From the sequence record NC_061418.1: a stretch of 64,000 nucleotides of DNA. One strand, 5' to 3'. Position numbers and translations under genes: made by a program. Shown piece after piece: positions 7,101 to 57,881 of this stretch. The notes under the pieces are model-generated. The model ran no database searches, was not told the origin of the DNA, and saw only the letters and a list, made by a program, of their open reading frames with translations. Numbering within the stretch: the stretch's first letter is position 1; every line of letters begins with the position of its first letter.

Positions 7101-9899
7101 ATGAATAGTTACGAAAAGAAAACGGTGAATCCTACCGGGATCAAAGTTTCCAGTCGTCCACAGGATTGGCTCCAACGCACCCCTTCGGCTACGGCAATTA
7201 TGTCGAAACTGGTTCAGGATGCGGTACATCGTACGACTACACCTGGAAATGGTGTCGATGTTCCCGACCCAACGATTTTCGACCGTCTCGTCAGTCGTCG
7301 CGCCAGAAAGAACCTGGACGCAGAAACAATCATCTCTTTAGCGCCCGACATTAAATTGATTAAACAGATGATTGTTTCCACTACCCTTTCTCCGGTCGAT
7401 ATGACCCAAGGAGAGTTAGGATTTAAAACCGAGGCGTCAGAGATCCCGCCAAGCGTCCTCAATCAAGTCACAGAGGTCATACGGGATCATTTTGAGTCAT
7501 ACTACCCCTTACGCGATAAACTCCCTGAGATCATCGGAGAGGCGTTATTTGAAACAGGTGCGTGGGTCGGTGTAATTGTCCCGGAAGCTGTTATCGATGA
7601 CATCATCAACCTTCGCGAAGTCGGCAGTTATCTGGCCACGGAAAGTTTCAACGAGAAACTGAAAACGCATTTCGTTGACGGAACCTTAAAATCTGTCGGC
7701 ATCTTAGGTGACCCAGGAATTACCGATCAGGAAATCCGTGATGCGAATAAAGGTAAAAAGAACATTCGCAGTAGTGCACCGGCACCGTCTTTAGAAAGCA
7801 TGTTCTCCATGCCGGTTATGAACCCTAATCAGGTTCGTATTAATGACAGTGCCACCATCACCGATAACCTCGGAATTATGGGTTTGAGCCATATCCGTAA
7901 CCAGATTAATGAAGAGCGTTTGAGAAACAAATACCGCTACGGACGTAGCGGAGCAGGGATGGAGGCGTACCGGTCAAGAAACGGTCATAACAACGTCTCG
8001 ACGGTCGCGAGAACGCTTTACAACTCACGGTCTGGTCAAACTAGCGTTAACCCTGTTAAAGTCATTCCTGCGGCCTCAGAAGCCAGCAGAAGCAGTATTG
8101 GTCATCCGCTGGTCATTAAGTGCCCCTCAGAATCGGTGATTCCGTGTTACCCGAAAGGCGATGAGCGAAACCACATCGGTTACGTCATTGTCCTGGATGA
8201 GCTGGGTAACCCGATCAACTTAACCGATGAACTGAACCAGGCGGCCACTAATGGTCAGATCGGTACAATGGGTGCTCAGCAACAACTGGACATGACCTCC
8301 AGTTTAATCCAGCAAACCCGCATTGCGCAGAACGGTATCTGTATGGATACCGACAAAATGGCGGCGGAAGAACGTATTCGCGTCTATAACCAGGTCTTAG
8401 AGGAAAACATCCTCAACCGTATTAAAAACGGTTTGATCGGTCGTAACGTGAAGATGGCCTGGAACGAAGATATCATGCGTATCATGATGTTCCGTCAGTT
8501 TGCGAACCAACGTACTAACCTCGTCTTTGTCCCTGCTGAACAAGTCGCGTATTTCGCTTACGACTACGACAGTAACGGGATGGGGAAATCGTTGCTTGAT
8601 GACATCAAACAGGTCTCTGCACTGCGAGCCATGACCACCTTCGCTAACTTTATGGCGGGCGTGAAGAATGCGGTAGGACGAACCAAAGTAACGATGAACA
8701 TCGACCCGCGTACACCTGACCCCGAGAAAGCTTATGCGATCTTGATTGATGAGTATCAACGAATGACCAGCACCGTTACTCCTACGGATGTCAGTTCTTC
8801 GGCGGAAATGTTCCGCGTACTCAGAATGATGGGGACGACGATTGAGGTACAGGGTAACCCACGTATCCCGAATACCACTGTGGACATTAATGAGTACCAA
8901 TCTCAGAAACAGATCATTGATGAGAACTTTACCAATGATCTTCGTCGTCAACAGTATATGGGTCTCTTTGTTACACCGGCGATGGTGGACATGACTGACG
9001 AGGCAGACTTTGCTATCACCCGTTGGACGTCTAACCAGCTCTACGCTAAACGCATCATGATGATTCAAGACGACACCTGTAAGCACGGGAAGAAGCTCGT
9101 CAGATCATACGTGAACTCGGACGGTGTTTTAATCGGACGTATTCAGAAGATCTTTGCCGAGAACAACGATAAGCTCCCTGAAGAATATCGTCTCGATAAA
9201 GAAAGTCAAATCCCGGAAGATTTAAAATACCTCGATGCGATCGACGCTTATTTTGACGCATTCTACCTTGAGTTACCTCGTCCGGAAAATAACCGGATTG
9301 AGAAACAAAAAGAAGAATTCGACAAAGTGAAAGATATGATTGACGACATTGTCGACTGTTACATCTCGAGCGAACTTCTGGGGGCATTTGCACCGGAAGA
9401 TCAATCTAAGATCGATATGCTCAGGGCACACATGACAGCGTACCTGAAACGCGACTGGTTACAGAGTCAAGGCTTCGATATGGGCTTTGTGAAGATCCTG
9501 TCGCCGGTCACGGAAGAAGATCCATCGCTGGATATGATCAAAGTCTTTACTACCGACATTGTCAATATGCTGCATAACTTTGGCGATTTCAGTTCGGCAT
9601 TGGCGGCCACCCGTGACGCGTTACTGAAACGGATGGAAGTAGAGAACCCGAAACAACATGAGATCCTTACAGCCAATAATGACGCTGGCGGCGGTTGGGA
9701 CAATGGCAGTTCCGGAAACGATTGGGACAACAACGATTCCGGTGGTGGCGACGCCTTTGGCGGTGGCGACTTCGGTTCCTTCGAAGATACCGAGGAAGAT
9801 CCTTTCGCCACGGACGAGTTAGAAGGAGGAGGAGAAACTTCCACTGAAGAGGAAGCAGATCCTTTCGCTACACCAGAAGAAACAAACGGACCTGAATAA
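7101..9899 (+). CDS. Portal protein (phiKZ gp129-like)
   Basis: 932 aa; conserved position between the nvRNAP-beta block and the gp130-like gene; candidate prohead-protease sites LATE-SF, PSLE-SM and AGME-AY; acidic disordered C-tail. Confidence 0.7.
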   Translation: MNSYEKKTVNPTGIKVSSRPQDWLQRTPSATAIMSKLVQDAVHRTTTPGNGVDVPDPTIFDRLVSRRARKNLDAETIISLAPDIKLIKQMIVSTTLSPVDMTQGELGFKTEASEIPPSVLNQVTEVIRDHFESYYPLRDKLPEIIGEALFETGAWVGVIVPEAVIDDIINLREVGSYLATESFNEKLKTHFVDGTLKSVGILGDPGITDQEIRDANKGKKNIRSSAPAPSLESMFSMPVMNPNQVRINDSATITDNLGIMGLSHIRNQINEERLRNKYRYGRSGAGMEAYRSRNGHNNVSTVARTLYNSRSGQTSVNPVKVIPAASEASRSSIGHPLVIKCPSESVIPCYPKGDERNHIGYVIVLDELGNPINLTDELNQAATNGQIGTMGAQQQLDMTSSLIQQTRIAQNGICMDTDKMAAEERIRVYNQVLEENILNRIKNGLIGRNVKMAWNEDIMRIMMFRQFANQRTNLVFVPAEQVAYFAYDYDSNGMGKSLLDDIKQVSALRAMTTFANFMAGVKNAVGRTKVTMNIDPRTPDPEKAYAILIDEYQRMTSTVTPTDVSSSAEMFRVLRMMGTTIEVQGNPRIPNTTVDINEYQSQKQIIDENFTNDLRRQQYMGLFVTPAMVDMTDEADFAITRWTSNQLYAKRIMMIQDDTCKHGKKLVRSYVNSDGVLIGRIQKIFAENNDKLPEEYRLDKESQIPEDLKYLDAIDAYFDAFYLELPRPENNRIEKQKEEFDKVKDMIDDIVDCYISSELLGAFAPEDQSKIDMLRAHMTAYLKRDWLQSQGFDMGFVKILSPVTEEDPSLDMIKVFTTDIVNMLHNFGDFSSALAATRDALLKRMEVENPKQHEILTANNDAGGGWDNGSSGNDWDNNDSGGGDAFGGGDFGSFEDTEEDPFATDELEGGGETSTEEEADPFATPEETNGPE

Positions 9900-49052: not shown

Positions 49053-49517
49053 TTGAATGAAAATCTTTTTCTAACTGAGGCAAATGACATGTCTAAAGCA
49101 CGTAAGAAGAAACCCACTAAAAAGCCCGGTTACATGAAGTTACACGGGTTTCAATACATCAATGACATTATTCGGAAATCACCGAAGTTACTCTCCGAAG
49201 CCGCCACTATAGTAGTGCAGTTCGACGCCTTAGATGAAAAAACTCTTTCTTTAGGGGAAATCCTGAAAGGGAAAGAAGAGATCAAGAAGATCGCAGAGAA
49301 AGCACCCTCTATTCGAACGACGCTCGAAGAACTGAAAACCGATTTCGAAACGCTGGTTGCGACACCGGGTAAAAAGGAAGAAGAGCACTTCGCCGATTTG
49401 GTTGGACGTGCTGCTGAATTTATTTCAATGATCACCGAAGACGTGATTGCTCCGATGGCAGAGATCGCGGAGATTGTAGAAAAACGCATTAACCAAAAGG
49501 AAACTGTCAATGTCTGA
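49053..49517 (+). CDS. Hypothetical protein (start probably MSKARKKK)
   Basis: 154 aa with a basic N-terminus; helical. Confidence 0.65.
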   Translation: MNENLFLTEANDMSKARKKKPTKKPGYMKLHGFQYINDIIRKSPKLLSEAATIVVQFDALDEKTLSLGEILKGKEEIKKIAEKAPSIRTTLEELKTDFETLVATPGKKEEEHFADLVGRAAEFISMITEDVIAPMAEIAEIVEKRINQKETVNV

Positions 49518-51234
49518 TTTTGAAAACGAACAGTCCGGTACTGAAGAAACCCCTACTATTCCTACCACGGGTGTAGGTATTCCGGTCACCAAACACGTTA
49601 TCACTGACGACGTGTTTGAGGAAGCGCCGGTAGCAGTCTCCGATGAGACTGTTCAGGAAGACACTGTCACTCCGGCGGAAGAAGAAACCAAACCGGAAGA
49701 AGAGACGGAAGAAAAAGAAGAAGAAGAACATCTTCTCTTTGACGTCGAACCGAATAAAATCGTGATTGATCCGACTCGCCCTATCTTTGTCAGGATCGAT
49801 CCTAATCAACGCGGCATTGCAGCGTTAAGTGTATTACCCACGACGCGTGCTGATGCAGAGACGTTTGAAGAAAGTTTGAATAACGTCACTAACGAAGACC
49901 TTGAATGGATTCTCTCGACTCGTAACGCGACGGATTCAGCGTATCCCGGAAACGGTCTTCTGAAAGCGGCGATACGTAACGGAGCAAAGTGGAAGACTCA
50001 GATCGAGAACCCGACGACAGCAATTCCGCTTTGCGATTACCGCAGTGCGTATAAGATCTTTGATCAACCGGCTACCAAAATTTCGGGTATTGATGCAATC
50101 GATATGTTCACTGCCGGAACTAACCTGGGTCGTCCTGTCACGGTACCGCTGTGGCACTCTGGTTTTTGGGTGAAACTCCGTGCACCGTCGGCTGCATTCT
50201 TAGCGGATATCGACCGTGCCTTAGCCTTCTCGCGTGAAGAGCTGGGTCTGGAAGTCTTTGGGGCGATTGGGGCCAATGACCGTTTGATCTTTGACGAGAT
50301 TCTCGTTGACGCGGCGTTGAAACTCGTTGTAGAAACCAATATCCCGATTGCGAAATCCCCGATGGAATTAAAAGAGGTTATTGACTTCTTTGATATCGAC
50401 AACCTGATCTGGGGTATGGCATTAGCAGCATTCCCGGACGGTTGTGAGATCGCCATTCCGTGCCCGAGCTGCCGTGGTGTGAGTCACGTCAAAGCAAACC
50501 TTCTCCGTATGCGTTTTGTCGACGAGTCGCGTTTGACGCAGGTTCAGATCCGTCAGATGGCCAAAGGGATTAGCCATAAGACAACGCTGGAAGAACTGAA
50601 AAAATACAAAGAAGAGTTCCAAATTCTCAATACCCAGAAATGGGAATGGAACAAACGTACCTTCACCTTCCGTTCGCCGACGATCGAAGAGTACTTAACG
50701 TCAGGTCGAGAGTATATCACTTCGGTTTCCCGTGCGTTAACCGAAACGCTGCGCGATGATATCACCGATGACTACCGTCGCGGTCAGAGCATGAAGTCAA
50801 TCCTTAACACGGAAGAGACAGCGCGGTTCATGCACTTCATTCGTGAGATTCGTATCCCGAACACCAATGAAAAAGGTAATCCGGATAACTACGGGATTGT
50901 TACCGATTCCCATGCTATCCTCGATATCATGCGTTATATTTCGGGTGACTTCGAAGCCAGTGATGGTTTAATCGTGGCAATCAATGATTTCATCAATGAC
51001 GCCATCTGCACTATCATTGGATTCCCTAACGTCAATTGCCCGGCCTGTGGTAAATTCTATCTCTCGAAGACCGGGGAAGCGACAATCATTGTTCCGTTTA
51101 ACCCTGCTGTGGGTTTTTTTATCCTTGCGCAACACAAGATTACGGAAGCGGGGTCGGAGCCACTGACGAATTTAATGACGTTAGGTCTGACCGGTTTGCT
51201 ATCCAAGGTATCGGCCAGCGAGGCTCAGGGTTAA
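49510..51234 (+). CDS. Probable tail/baseplate assembly chaperone (G-like), two CxxC pairs
   Basis: 574 aa; acidic N-terminus; CPSC and CPAC; slippery G GGT TTT near the 3-prime end. Confidence 0.55.
   Translation: MSDFENEQSGTEETPTIPTTGVGIPVTKHVITDDVFEEAPVAVSDETVQEDTVTPAEEETKPEEETEEKEEEEHLLFDVEPNKIVIDPTRPIFVRIDPNQRGIAALSVLPTTRADAETFEESLNNVTNEDLEWILSTRNATDSAYPGNGLLKAAIRNGAKWKTQIENPTTAIPLCDYRSAYKIFDQPATKISGIDAIDMFTAGTNLGRPVTVPLWHSGFWVKLRAPSAAFLADIDRALAFSREELGLEVFGAIGANDRLIFDEILVDAALKLVVETNIPIAKSPMELKEVIDFFDIDNLIWGMALAAFPDGCEIAIPCPSCRGVSHVKANLLRMRFVDESRLTQVQIRQMAKGISHKTTLEELKKYKEEFQILNTQKWEWNKRTFTFRSPTIEEYLTSGREYITSVSRALTETLRDDITDDYRRGQSMKSILNTEETARFMHFIREIRIPNTNEKGNPDNYGIVTDSHAILDIMRYISGDFEASDGLIVAINDFINDAICTIIGFPNVNCPACGKFYLSKTGEATIIVPFNPAVGFFILAQHKITEAGSEPLTNLMTLGLTGLLSKVSASEAQG
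51111..51120 (+). promoter_or_regulatory. Candidate -1 programmed frameshift site G GGT TTT (TTT)
   Basis: X XXY YYZ heptamer in the correct phase; the -1 frame opens at TAA 51099-51101 and stays open to 51638. Confidence 0.7.
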
Positions 51235-51251
51235 TTGAGAAGACAGGCGGA

Positions 51252-51638
51252 TTGGGGAACCTTTCCGCCAAAGTGGCGTTGCGCAGGGCGTACGACCTCG
51301 ATAACGGGATTTACTCTGAAGCAGTAGATGCCAAAGTCCCATTCTCTCTTATTGCGATGCATGAACCTGAAGCGGCTGCAAACAAAGGGAAATGGGATGA
51401 GTTACTCGAAAAATATCACACGCACCAGATTAAAGATTACTTCAACTTTACGTTTACAGATTGGGTGAGTCAACCTAATGATATGGTTGAAAAGCAAATC
51501 AACACTTCTATTCGGTGGCGTGAACGAGAAGTCAATGCTAAATCGGAAGAAACGAAAGAGTTAGAGGCACAACTTTCCCAACAGGGTATTACGGTCCCTA
51601 ACGTTCAAATGATGAAGGAAAAAGGCCATGGCCAATAA
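51252..51638 (+). CDS. Probable C-terminal (T-like) extension of the frameshifted chaperone
   Basis: Only a TTG start with no clear RBS; in frame with the -1 frame of the upstream slippery site. Confidence 0.62.
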   Translation: MGNLSAKVALRRAYDLDNGIYSEAVDAKVPFSLIAMHEPEAAANKGKWDELLEKYHTHQIKDYFNFTFTDWVSQPNDMVEKQINTSIRWREREVNAKSEETKELEAQLSQQGITVPNVQMMKEKGHGQ

Positions 51639-52266
51639 GTTTGATAAAATCCAAAAGAAATCTCAGGAACTCTCTGACGCAGCAGATGCGGTAGCAGAAA
51701 CGGCTGCTTCGGGTGAGAACGACAACGCTCCTGTTTCAGCAACCGTGGCAACCGAGTCTGCGGTAGGTGGCAGCGTGAAAGTAAGCACGGTCTCTGAAAC
51801 TGCGGCTAAGACTTCAGCTGATGTTTACGCTGGAGAAAGCGATGCGGTCAAATTGATCATTGCACACCTCGAAGACTACGTTCTGAAAATGGCGCCAGAA
51901 AAAGCGCAGACTGAATCTTCACTGAAAGAAAATCAGAGCGTGCTCTATCGGACACTGGAACAACTGGTTAATCTGGACAATGTTGCGGATTTTGCGGTCT
52001 GTATGAAACGTCTGTTTGCGCTGGTTCGCAAATACGAAGACGGAGCCTTTGCGCCCAATATGCGTTTTCGCCGTCTGAGCCTTTTAGCGAAGGGTGATAA
52101 ACAACTCGACAAATACATCGCGTTCGTCGACATGGTTTGCGCGTTTGCTACTCCTGCAGTGCGTAAAACTATCATTCAGCGTTACAACTTGGCACGAGCG
52201 GCAGAATTCGCTAAACCGGATTACCGTGAGCGTCTGATTGAATTCGTGAAGGCGATCAGCGGTTAA
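51628..52266 (+). CDS. Conserved hypothetical protein (phiKZ gp77-like)
   Basis: 212 aa; Ala/Ser/Thr-rich N-terminus; GAFAPNMRFR. Confidence 0.65.
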   Translation: MANKFDKIQKKSQELSDAADAVAETAASGENDNAPVSATVATESAVGGSVKVSTVSETAAKTSADVYAGESDAVKLIIAHLEDYVLKMAPEKAQTESSLKENQSVLYRTLEQLVNLDNVADFAVCMKRLFALVRKYEDGAFAPNMRFRRLSLLAKGDKQLDKYIAFVDMVCAFATPAVRKTIIQRYNLARAAEFAKPDYRERLIEFVKAISG

Positions 52267-53383: not shown

Positions 53384-55348
53384 ATGTTTAATTTTGCTAA
53401 AGCCGCATTTGGAATGGTTGAAGTAGAAGAATCGAACGGAAAGATTAAGATCACCGCTATTCGTTCTAAGGACGCTTTAGGGGAAATTTATAATACCTGG
53501 CGTACCTCTCGTATCGAACAAAGTATGTTCACTAAGATTACGCCTTACAGTATCGAATTTTACAGTTTCTTCGCGGTAGAGTTTGTTTACATTCTCGATC
53601 AGATTATCGCCAAACAGGGGCGAAGTATGATTGCGAAGAAAACATTGAAACAAGTGAAAGAAGGTATTCTCACTAATACTTGGATGCGGTCTACTCAGGT
53701 AGATCACGACCCTATTTTGGATCGCAGTAAACTGAGCCTGTTTACCAAAAGCCCGCTGCGCCATCAAATGGAATTCATTGATCATTACGATACTGTTGTT
53801 CCTAAATGGCAGCTCAGCGGTTACTGTATGGCTATGAATACTGGGTCCGGGAAAACCTTGTCTTCGTTAATGATCGCAGAAATGCTCAATGTTGATATCA
53901 TTATCATGGTATCATTAAAAGCGTCTATTTATCGTGTCTGGGAAGATGCGATGCAAAATGATTACAAAAAGACGCCTGAGTACTGGGTTCAGGCACGAGA
54001 TGGATCATTGCCCTCGGGAACATTACCGAAGTATTTAATCTACCATATGGAAGCTATTGGTAAATTACTGGAAGATTCCGGGCGATTCACTGGTAAGAAA
54101 ATTGCATTAATACTCGACGAATCTCACAAACTGAATGAGCTTAGTTCTCAGCGCACTCAAGATATTTTACAATTTTGTAAGCGTATACAACCCGTTACAA
54201 CGCTATGGGCTTCCGCAACACCGATCAAAGCGTATGGTTCAGAAGCTATCCCAATGCTGGCGACGTTTGATAAGATGATGACGTTAGAGGCCATGGAAGC
54301 CTTTAAGAAACTATACGGGAAGTCAAGTAAAAAATGTTTTGACATCATACGTCATCGTATGGGCAATGTCATGTTTAAAGTGGAAATTGTTAAAACCAAC
54401 CCAATCATCGAGAATGTTCCGATCAAACTGAAAGACCCGGATAGGTTTTTACTGTCTACGTTGAAAATGGACATGAAAGACTATATTCTGGAGCGGATTG
54501 AGTACTGGAAAAAACTTGAGCCGCAAGTTAAGTTAGGTTACTATTCTGGCGTAGACAAATATGCTCGTACTGTTAAGACTAAAGAACAAGAAGCTCAACT
54601 AAAACAATACCGACGTTTTGTTGAGCAAATCTCTAAAACCACCGATTACCAAATGGTGAAAGAAGAGATGATGTTCTGTAATAAGTTTGAAAAGAATTTA
54701 ATCGAGCCCTTGCTGCGCGGAGAAGATTTAAAGAATTTCCGTAGTTACAAATCAGTGATCAAATATTTACCGTTAAAAGTTCGTGGTGAGTGTTTAGGTA
54801 ACGTCGTAGGGAAGCGCAGAGAAGAAGTTACACTTGCTTTAATTGCGGAGTGTGATCTTCCTAAATACATTAAAGCGGCAGAGAAGAAAACTATCATTTT
54901 TACTAGCTACGTGAAAGCGGTAGAAATGACAGAAAACTATCTGGTGTCGAAAGGATTCAAACCTGTAACCGTTTACGGGGAAGGTGAGGATTTAACTAAA
55001 CAAGTGAAGCGATTCTTTGATGATAGTAGTATTAACCCATTGATTGCAACCTATCAAAGTTTATCTACTTCGGTTCCCTTGATCGCAGCGAACGTTATTT
55101 TAGCCATCAACGCGCCATTCCGCGATTACATCATGGAACAGGCTATCGGTCGTATCGACCGTATTAACCAAAGTGCCCAAACCTATGTCTTTAAGTTCTA
55201 TTTGGAGACATCGGAACCTAACATCAGTAGTCGAACACTTGATATCTTAACCTGGTCGGAAGAACAAGTGAACCAAATACTTGGTGTGAAAGAGGAGGCG
55301 GTAGCCCTGGAAGCTTGGTCACTTGAAGCCATTCCGCAATACACGTAG
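53384..55348 (+). CDS. SF2 (SNF2/RAD-like) DExH helicase (phiKZ gp75-like)
   Basis: MNTGSGKT, LILDESH, WASATP, QAIGRIDR. Confidence 0.88.
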   Translation: MFNFAKAAFGMVEVEESNGKIKITAIRSKDALGEIYNTWRTSRIEQSMFTKITPYSIEFYSFFAVEFVYILDQIIAKQGRSMIAKKTLKQVKEGILTNTWMRSTQVDHDPILDRSKLSLFTKSPLRHQMEFIDHYDTVVPKWQLSGYCMAMNTGSGKTLSSLMIAEMLNVDIIIMVSLKASIYRVWEDAMQNDYKKTPEYWVQARDGSLPSGTLPKYLIYHMEAIGKLLEDSGRFTGKKIALILDESHKLNELSSQRTQDILQFCKRIQPVTTLWASATPIKAYGSEAIPMLATFDKMMTLEAMEAFKKLYGKSSKKCFDIIRHRMGNVMFKVEIVKTNPIIENVPIKLKDPDRFLLSTLKMDMKDYILERIEYWKKLEPQVKLGYYSGVDKYARTVKTKEQEAQLKQYRRFVEQISKTTDYQMVKEEMMFCNKFEKNLIEPLLRGEDLKNFRSYKSVIKYLPLKVRGECLGNVVGKRREEVTLALIAECDLPKYIKAAEKKTIIFTSYVKAVEMTENYLVSKGFKPVTVYGEGEDLTKQVKRFFDDSSINPLIATYQSLSTSVPLIAANVILAINAPFRDYIMEQAIGRIDRINQSAQTYVFKFYLETSEPNISSRTLDILTWSEEQVNQILGVKEEAVALEAWSLEAIPQYT

Positions 55349-55371
55349 CAAAAAAAAAGAATATAGCGGAT

Positions 55372-57099: not shown

Positions 57100-57573
57100 C
57101 TTTCTTCTTCTGTTAGTTCGTCTAAATCACGACTAGTCGACCCTCTGCTGAAGTTACGACTAAACTTCTCACCTGCTTTATCATCGTCTCCCAAACAAAC
57201 AAATTCGTAGGGAAGTAATAATAACTGTTGTTTCAGTTGAGGGGAAAGGTCAGAACCTAATGCGCTCCAGCTATTTAAGTCCAGGACATGAAGACTGGCT
57301 GATTTAAAGACAGACTCCGTTAAGAATACGGGACCGGGTTTCAGTTCTAATTTCTAAACCAAAAACACCGGCATTACCAAGAAGTCTCGTGAAATAACGG
57401 GCTTCTTTTGGGTTCTTTGTTTTCTTGGGGGCGTCGGGTGTATATACCTGATAACCGCGCAGTTTATAATCGAAACCAAACAAAGGTACGGTAAGACTGG
57501 TTTCTGTTAACCAATTAGTCGGGTAGCGGTTTACGTCGTAATGACGTTCGAGCAAGTGTTCGGTTAAGTTCAT
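57072..57573 (-). pseudogene. Frameshifted primase-like TOPRIM gene
   Basis: ORF 57304..57573 gives the N-half (RGYQVYTP...KEARYFT...VFGLE). The +1 frame continues LELKPGPVFLTESVFKSASLHVLDLNSWSALGSDLSPQLKQQLLLLPYEFVCLGDDDKAG...KPYL-stop(57072). Confidence 0.75.
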
Positions 57574-57680
57574 GACTTGGTCTCTCTTTTATCTTGAGCT
57601 GAGTGTTTTCATACGGGTTTGCAGTAACTGCGGAAAACAGATTTAATCTTTGCATCCCGATAAAAATAGTAAGTGCGTTC

Positions 57681-57881
57681 TTAGCGAACATAATTCCTCC
57701 TTTGGTTTAATTCTGTTCTGGTCGGTTTTTCAGCATCGATAGGTTCTAGCCAAAAATGTTTACATTCCCTACATTCCCAAGTTATTTCATTGTCGTCCTC
57801 ATCGTATACTTGAGAGCAGTGCATAGCTTGGCACATAGGGCAATCCATCCCGGTCCACTGGAACGTCATGGTTTTGCACAC
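57681..57881 (-). CDS. Small zinc-ribbon protein
   Basis: CPMC...CREC. Confidence 0.6.
   Translation of the reverse strand: MCKTMTFQWTGMDCPMCQAMHCSQVYDEDDNEITWECRECKHFWLEPIDAEKPTRTELNQRRNYVR

Follow-up and report, generated by a model that had tools for sequence, protein, structure and literature searches.

A conserved T-run and an open −1 frame point to recoding between the phiKZ gp77 and gp76 homologs of jumbo phages

The window analyzed here, a stretch of 64,000 nucleotides (nt), is part of the genome of Klebsiella phage KpLz-2_45 (MN871446; genus Siatvirus) at 100% identity, with each window position equal to the record position minus 124000. We focus on two consecutive genes on its plus strand, open reading frame (ORF) 1 and ORF2, and on a run of T residues near the 3′ end of ORF1 at which translation is proposed to pass from one gene into the other. 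ORF1 is the ortholog of phiKZ gp77, 201phi2-1 gp136, and EL gp47, and ORF2 occupies the position of phiKZ gp76. To the left of ORF1 lie gp78-, gp79-, and gp80-like genes, which represent the virion RNA polymerase (RNAP) beta′ cluster, and to the right lies a gp75-like helicase gene; a DNA polymerase gene is also among the neighbors. A preliminary description made from the letters of the window had placed the pair among RNAP and helicase genes, and these neighbors agree with it. In the inventory of Chimalliviridae core genes, phiKZ gp077 is cg18, a “hypothetical protein” (PMC10299810, supplement). Genes called gp77 in the papers on phages Goslar and PCH45 follow the numbering of those phages and were set aside as unrelated to phiKZ gp77. 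The features that concern the junction are as follows:

49510..51234, + strand: ORF1, whose 0-frame product has 574 amino acids (aa); assigned by orthology, invariant columns, an AlphaFold2 model, and fold matches in BFVD.
51099..51101, + strand: TAA, the last −1-frame stop before the slip site and the 5′ limit of the shift window, as read from the sequence.
51114..51120, + strand: a slippery run of T residues (T TTT TTT) that ORF1 reads in phase as F536-F537; conserved in relatives.
51121..51251, + strand: a putative dual-coding overlap, holding the C-terminal tail of ORF1 (37 residues) in the 0 frame and a start-less, predicted-disordered linker in the −1 frame; assigned from an alignment of −1-frame translations (A2) and AlphaFold2.
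51252..51638, + strand: ORF2 as annotated, the gp76-position gene, with a TTG start and 128 aa (PHROG 12109/7580); the helical C-terminal domain of the −1 extension.

The 0 frame of ORF1 reads GCT GTG GGT TTT TTT ATC at the junction and holds two overlapping X XXY YYZ heptamers in phase with the gene, G GGT TTT (51111-51117) and T TTT TTT (51114-51120). The −1 frame is closed by the TAA at 51099-51101, four codons upstream of the T-run, and is then open into ORF2 as far as the stop at 51636-51638; the entire −1-frame piece spans 51114-51638. The first ATG, GTG, or TTG of this frame after the run is the TTG at 51252, the only start codon of ORF2, and the +1-frame ORF ends at 51166. A slip at either heptamer leads to a predicted product of 709 aa. 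The G GGT TTT heptamer, the stop and the open frame, the lone TTG, the closing +1 frame, and the predicted length had all been given in the preliminary description, and the sequence confirms each of them. The two frames were translated, searched, and folded separately.

The T7 tract at 51114-51120 is the sole run of at least seven T residues on the plus strand of the window. The long ORFs of the window hold 72 in-phase heptamers, and of these the site is followed by the longest open −1 frame, 174 to 175 codons, compared with 75 for the next best and a median of 11; the pattern is far beyond chance. Runs of at least seven A residues occur only twice on the same strand, at 9898 and 55350, and long homopolymers are otherwise nearly absent; the A-run at 55350 begins 2 nt past the end of the helicase ORF (53384-55348).

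To follow the junction across relatives, we compared 12 GenBank phages, 50 IMG/VR loci, and 5 Logan contigs, with identities to ORF1 from 99% down to approximately 20%. The GenBank set contained FBKp24, Centimanus, Moabite, Ea277G, PCH45, DT01, 201phi2-1, OMKO1 (Phikzvirus), SA002, and EarlPhillipIV, and later additions (the Bacillus phage AgentSmith, RSF1, Aphrodite1, and JM-2012) took the place of near-duplicates. The downstream ORF lies in the −1 frame of ORF1 in all relatives compared, and a T-run is present at homologous codons, those of the family's invariant Phe-Phe, in all 56 tabulated loci. The run is most often seven residues long (31 loci), followed by eight (15 loci), six (8 loci), and five (2 loci). 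It forms an in-phase T TTT TTT or T TTT TTC in 45 of the 50 IMG/VR loci, and the remaining 5 have runs of five or six T residues at the same codons, within ACG TTT TTT (n = 3) or CTT TTT ATT (n = 2). AgentSmith carries T TTT TTA, which encodes Phe-Leu in the 0 frame and yet retains T7. Elsewhere in the ORF1 genes, TTT accounts for 43% of Phe codons, whereas at the run TTT is fixed, as is the T before it. Two codon registers are seen at the 5′ end, with the total length of the run maintained. GGGTTTT, which the preliminary description had singled out as the key heptamer, is confined to the group of Siatvirus, Maaswegvirus, Ea277G, and PCH45. The alignment across the Chimalliviridae that it had suggested supports the slippery T-run and the open −1 frame, which are conserved there and beyond, and not the heptamer itself; judged from these comparisons, the conserved element is the T-run rather than GGGTTTT.

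Past the run, 51 loci have 152 to 183 open −1-frame codons, and five further loci have 139 to 176. The nearest −1 stop upstream lies a median of 9 codons away (range, 0 to 54) and directly abuts the run in locus L020, and the +1 frame of the relatives closes after a median of 9 codons. Given a −1-frame stop density of 0.10 per codon inside ORF1, the chance of at least 150 open codons is approximately 1e-7 per locus. The ORF1 family comprises 1,726 representatives after 50% clustering, and no in-frame fusion of ORF1 and ORF2 was found among the best 150 of them, which range from 438 to 657 aa. Long homologs (645 to 721 aa, including the 696-aa outlier P0015 and the 721-aa protein of EarlPhillipIV) carry an N-terminal extension and end a few residues past the Phe-Phe.

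A homopolymer miscount during sequencing or assembly could, in principle, split one continuous gene in this way. Homopolymers are error-prone, and another coding sequence (CDS) of the same GenBank record, KpLz245_1980, is flagged as frameshifted. However, the same −1 relation recurs in approximately 60 independent assemblies from various laboratories and platforms with run lengths of 5 to 8, the 0-frame tail past the run is conserved as protein, and neither the 150 best representatives nor the 696-aa outlier is an in-frame fusion. We consider the chance of such an artifact negligible. Based on these alignments, a recoding device looks conserved throughout the phiKZ-like jumbo-phage group, with a jumbo phage of Bacillus among its members.

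When translated from the run as far as the stop, the −1 frames align as a true family (A2; n = 40) represented by PHROGs 12109, 7580, and 13274, with 38 of the 40 matching PHROG 12109. Their C-terminal helical domain carries an RRAYDLDNGIY-type motif in the window's clade. A second conserved motif, (H/D)V....F(G/A), lies 23 to 43 residues past the run (51177-51200 in the window), and its near-invariant Phe falls beyond the ORF1 stop in 35 of 40 loci, so coding in the 0 frame is unable to explain its conservation. AlphaFold predicts residues 1 to 47 of the −1 piece as a disordered linker followed by helices, with a low mean predicted local distance difference test (pLDDT) score of 60.

ATG, GTG, and TTG are absent between the run and the motif Phe in 32 of 40 loci, and in 9 of 40 no start codon precedes even the conserved Tyr of the RRAY-type domain motif. 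The TTG at 51252 corresponds to an ATG in FBKp24 and Centimanus; in relatives at 51 to 56% identity, the first start already lies 61 to 71 codons past the run, downstream of the most conserved motif. It lies 79 codons past the run in Ea277G and 87 in OMKO1, the latter within the conserved domain. Since start codons fall late or after the conserved motif, gene callers yield truncated ORF2 products of 77 to 153 aa with arbitrary starts, or none, and the small ORF after cg18 is annotated inconsistently. In the public annotations of OMKO1 (L010, 3712-4227), Ea277G (L006, 2827-3345), and AgentSmith (L067, 3073-3574), the gp76-position gene begins deep in the conserved domain, and in locus L071 (3558-3977) it is uncalled; all four loci have no start codon before that domain.

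These data bear on the possibility that no recoding takes place, that ORF2 is a separate gene translated from the TTG at 51252, perhaps by termination-reinitiation or from a noncanonical codon like that of T4 gene 26*, and that the T-run and the open frame arise incidentally from the Phe-Phe of ORF1. Every public annotation has two genes, and disorder is predicted for residues 1 to 47 of the −1 piece. In the window's clade, the start is found at a homologous place (TTG in KpLz-2_45 and ATG in FBKp24 and Centimanus), 17 nt past the ORF1 stop, with a weak Shine-Dalgarno (SD)-like GAGAAG(G) 9 to 15 nt upstream, which weighs against frameshifting as the only route to ORF2. Against a separate gene stand the loss of that start at 51 to 56% identity, the near-invariant −1 Phe that precedes any start in most loci and lies outside ORF1, and a −1 frame that is open from the T-run in every locus and closed shortly upstream. 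The fixed TTT with its preceding T and the T7 that AgentSmith retains over Phe-Leu are likewise hard to reconcile with a by-product of Phe-Phe. We judge this explanation to be quite unlikely, and a free ORF2 from the TTG (ATG in FBKp24) may be made in addition in the window's clade, where the start is not conserved more widely.

The 0-frame tail of ORF1 past the run is long (39 codons) in the window's clade and is conserved at the protein level, its codons changing synonymously. Where the residue is the same, codon identity peaks in the overlap, at 0.61 to 0.66 compared with approximately 0.47 elsewhere in the gene, and on this pattern of substitution the overlap at 51121..51251 appears to be dual-coding in the clade. 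The conserved tail suggests that a short and a long product are both made and that both are probably functional. KpLz-2_45 and FBKp24/Centimanus (78% identical overall) show no difference over a 67-nt block at 51176-51242, which takes in the end of the overlap and the stop of ORF1.

We propose that most ribosomes would stay in the 0 frame and terminate at 51232-51234, giving the 574-aa protein, and that some would slip back by one base on T TTT TTT (51114-51120), with Phe-tRNAs re-pairing in the −1 frame. The shifted ribosomes would then cross a flexible linker of approximately 45 residues, translate the ORF2 domain, and terminate at 51636-51638. The resulting 709-aa product would have its first ~536 residues in common with the short form, and ORF1 and ORF2 would constitute one recoded pair equivalent to phiKZ gp77/gp76, that is, cg18 and the small ORF that follows it. 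The frameshift interpretation is strongly supported by the comparative evidence, and recoding of the pair by one route or the other, ribosomal or transcriptional, is highly probable. For ribosomal −1 frameshifting at the T-run specifically, we estimate a probability of roughly 0.57. The site, the frames, and their conservation are shown directly, whereas the ribosomal nature of the shift, its efficiency, and the role of the pair are inferred.

The interval within which the shift can occur runs from the nearest upstream −1 stop, which abuts the run in L020, to the 0-frame stop, which lies 8 to 13 codons past the run in 201phi2-1 and OMKO1, and the T-run is the sole conserved slippery element within it. 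Re-pairing of Phe-tRNA is possible at every site, in tandem on T TTT TTY/A and by P-site slippage on T5-T6. Perfect hairpins of 8 to 14 bp lie 2 to 10 nt downstream of the run in some clades (L035-L044, L048/L053/L056, and L059) and in both T5 loci (L032/L041). A downstream RNA hairpin has not yet been transcribed when the polymerase passes the run and cannot act on it, so these hairpins favor a ribosomal event. Five metagenomic loci that are otherwise diverged (L035, L036, L037, L039, and L044) contain a perfect 8-bp stem (ACTCAGCG / CGCTGAGT) 7 to 10 nt past their T TTT TTC sites. This stem is a candidate clade-specific frameshift stimulator, and its pairs are invariant and thus offer no covariation to test.

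Several results weigh against a ribosomal mechanism. A universal downstream stimulator was not found in single-sequence folds of 47 loci, where the mean fold z was 0.06 relative to control windows, and the window's own clade has no conserved or covarying structure (consensus fold, −5.3 kcal/mol). That clade has no downstream hairpin, and an Rfam search returned no match. Upstream SD-like motifs are not enriched (3 of 51 loci versus a background of 9%), run length does not correlate significantly with hairpin strength across the 56 loci (Spearman 0.16, p = 0.23), and the T7-T8 runs of 46 of these loci are also classic substrates for transcriptional slippage, which would give an identical protein. 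A 5-bp hairpin, AACCC...GGGTT, lies directly before the T-run of the window (51100-51115) and was flagged as terminator-like. It arises from Asn-Pro and Gly-Phe codons and is retained in FBKp24 with one wobble pair; since it is absent from distant relatives, it was rejected as part of the signal.

The preliminary description had cautioned that T7 might instead cause transcriptional slippage, and that caveat stands. Under this alternative, the phage or host RNAP would stutter on the template A-run and insert one extra U into some mRNAs. The T7-T8 runs, the two registers at the 5′ end of the run with its length maintained, and the lack of a universal downstream structure or upstream SD-like stimulator are all in its favor, as is the near absence of other homopolymers of at least seven residues from the window, which suggests that such runs carry a cost. 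Homopolymeric U or A heptamers support a mixture of ribosomal and transcriptional slippage in Escherichia coli. Slippage usually requires runs of 7 to 9 residues or more, and T5-T6 is short for the polymerases known to be prone to it. However, 10 of the 56 loci have only T5-T6, the T5 loci carry strong hairpins just downstream that are unable to act on the polymerase, and each site is also a valid in-phase site for tRNA re-pairing. We regard transcriptional slippage as possible, at less than even odds. In its boldest version, the unusual multisubunit RNAP of the phage itself stutters on the T-run, which, if true, would be the first programmed slippage for that enzyme class; the run lends itself to asking whether RNA polymerases of the phiKZ type slip.

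Ribosomal −1 frameshifting on such a site has bacterial counterparts. OrfA-OrfB of the IS1 and IS3 families of insertion sequence (IS) elements and dnaX of E. coli undergo −1 frameshifting, and Thermus dnaX and IS elements also provide examples of transcriptional slippage. The cg18 site would likewise be a bacterial-type −1 recoding site on a homopolymeric or near-homopolymeric heptamer, a run that either the ribosome or the polymerase could use. It differs in that the IS and dnaX sites are rich in A (A AAA AAG or runs of A) and are usually accompanied by a hairpin or pseudoknot or by an internal SD, whereas the cg18 run is U-rich and has no general stimulator.

The −1 event joining ORF1 and ORF2 had been described as G/GT-type; the event has strong comparative support, and the label does not hold. 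In phage lambda, a −1 shift on G GGA AAG extends G, a first product of ~140 aa, into GT, and the two genes lie between the tail tube and tape measure genes. A −1 frameshift is conserved in the tail-assembly chaperone genes of long-tailed phages, including E/E+E′ of P2. The pair in the window resembles this system in that the shift lies near the 3′ end of the first gene and extends it with a second ORF, that a common N-terminal body would occur with a rarer form bearing an extra C-terminal domain, that the device is kept throughout a phage group in which sequence identity is low, and that the proteins are probably assembly factors absent from the virion. It differs from lambda G/GT in several respects: ORF1 has 574 aa rather than ~140, it lies between the virion RNAP beta′ cluster (gp80/79/78-like genes) and the helicase gene rather than beside tube and tape measure genes, its slip site is a T-run, and the downstream domain follows a disordered linker of 25 to 85 residues. 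ORF1 also has no match to a chaperone family by sequence or to a solved structure, and its predicted fold is gp26-like. By analogy, the pair is best described as the G/GT principle acting on another assembly protein, one that is gp26-like, in another genomic context and with a U-run slip site.

The fold of ORF1 points to T4 gp26. An AlphaFold2 model built from 129 sequences has a pLDDT of 86.8 and a predicted template modeling score of 0.84. Foldseek returned no match in the PDB (best E value, 0.5), and sequence searches with ORF1, ORF2, and profiles A1 and A2 gave no usable match to a solved structure. Against BFVD, orthologs came first and were followed by at least 15 proteins of 220 to 290 aa from unrelated myoviruses, named “baseplate hub assembly protein, T4-like,” “baseplate hub subunit,” or “hub assembly chaperone” (probability, ~1.0; E value, 6e-5 to 1e-2; target template modeling score, ~0.45 to 0.59). 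The annotators of DT01 and AgentSmith gave the ORF1 homolog the same hub-assembly name. The fold comparison suggested in the preliminary description gave a resemblance of ORF1 to gp26-like hub proteins in BFVD, with neither a PDB fold match nor a confident model of the −1 piece. In Pfam, NCBIfam, and PHROGs, ORF1 and its relatives match only unnamed PHROGs and no chaperone family.

In T4, a shorter product, gp26*, arises from gp26 by internal initiation in the same frame. The model of the ORF1 core resembles the BFVD entries named for T4-like hub assembly proteins or subunits, neither ORF1 nor gp26 is found in mature baseplate structures, and both genes give two nested products, as predicted in the case of ORF1. 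The second T4 product is not made by frameshifting, ORF1 is more than twice as long as gp26 and is not adjacent to hub genes, and no similarity between the two was detected at the sequence level. T4 gp26 appears in PMC3004832 as a hub assembly chaperone. In the preprint on Goslar, all hub and inner-baseplate density is attributed to other gene products, and gp81, the cg18 ortholog, goes unmentioned; this attribution and the lack of PDB relatives are consistent with a nonvirion role of ORF1.

We propose, on the strength of the models, that the pair may be a two-form, nonvirion baseplate-hub assembly factor with a logic like that of lambda G/GT. Some points weigh against this role. The gp26-like assignment comes from predicted structures with names given by the database, and no gp26-family profile in Pfam, PHROGs, or NCBIfam matched any of 10 family members at an E value of ≤1, so we treat the link as a fold-level resemblance. 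In addition, a proteomic study of phage Churi counts gp256, its homolog of phiKZ gp077, among 15 proteins seen early in infection (PMC11849849), which is a poor fit to a late tail-assembly role.

Four cysteines of ORF1 that form two CxxC pairs (C318, C321, C510, and C513) are invariant across 129 family members, a pattern suggestive of a zinc site, and the second of these pairs is 23 residues upstream of the slip site.

The preliminary description knew of no annotation of such a fusion in phiKZ-like phages, and a joined CDS is annotated in 0 of 16 GenBank records inspected. A full-text literature search, with incomplete coverage of journals, found no report of a frameshift in cg18. Tentatively, and at less than even odds, we suggest that an ancient, unannotated recoding signal in the cg18 of all phiKZ-like jumbo phages sets short and long forms of a gp26-like hub-assembly factor, with the G/GT principle reinvented independently. 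cg18 is one of ~68 core genes of nucleus-forming jumbo phages and is still “hypothetical.” A two-form hub-assembly factor would be the first functional lead for the pair, and hundreds of genome annotations would need correcting if cg18 and the small ORF are one recoded unit. A ratio of two assembly-factor forms set by frameshifting would also extend that rule to a new protein family and genomic context.

ORF1 and ORF2 belong to a rightward unit of four genes, the remaining features of which are as follows:

49089..49517, + strand: the upstream gene and first of the unit (142 aa), the phiKZ gp78 ortholog; assigned by GenBank annotation MGA_189 and synteny with 201phi2-1 gp137.
51628..52266, + strand: ORF3 (212 aa), the final gene, called “virion structural protein” in the annotation of phage MJ359.
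52274..52307, + strand: a terminator-like hairpin with a 15-bp stem, which ends the gp78-like/ORF1/ORF2/ORF3 unit between convergent genes.

The gp78-like gene overlaps the start of ORF1 by 8 nt, and its counterpart in the synteny comparison, 201phi2-1 gp137, carries the record note “similar to phiKZ gp78.” The ATG of ORF3 at 51628 lies 11 nt before the ORF2 stop and is preceded by a good SD-like GAAGGA; the ORF3 product has a weak match to a head-and-packaging PHROG. Farther right in the window, the submitters of the GenBank record flagged one frameshift in KpLz245_1980 (57304-57573, − strand), which overlaps the next small CDS (57515-57691) and could be either another recoding site or an error.

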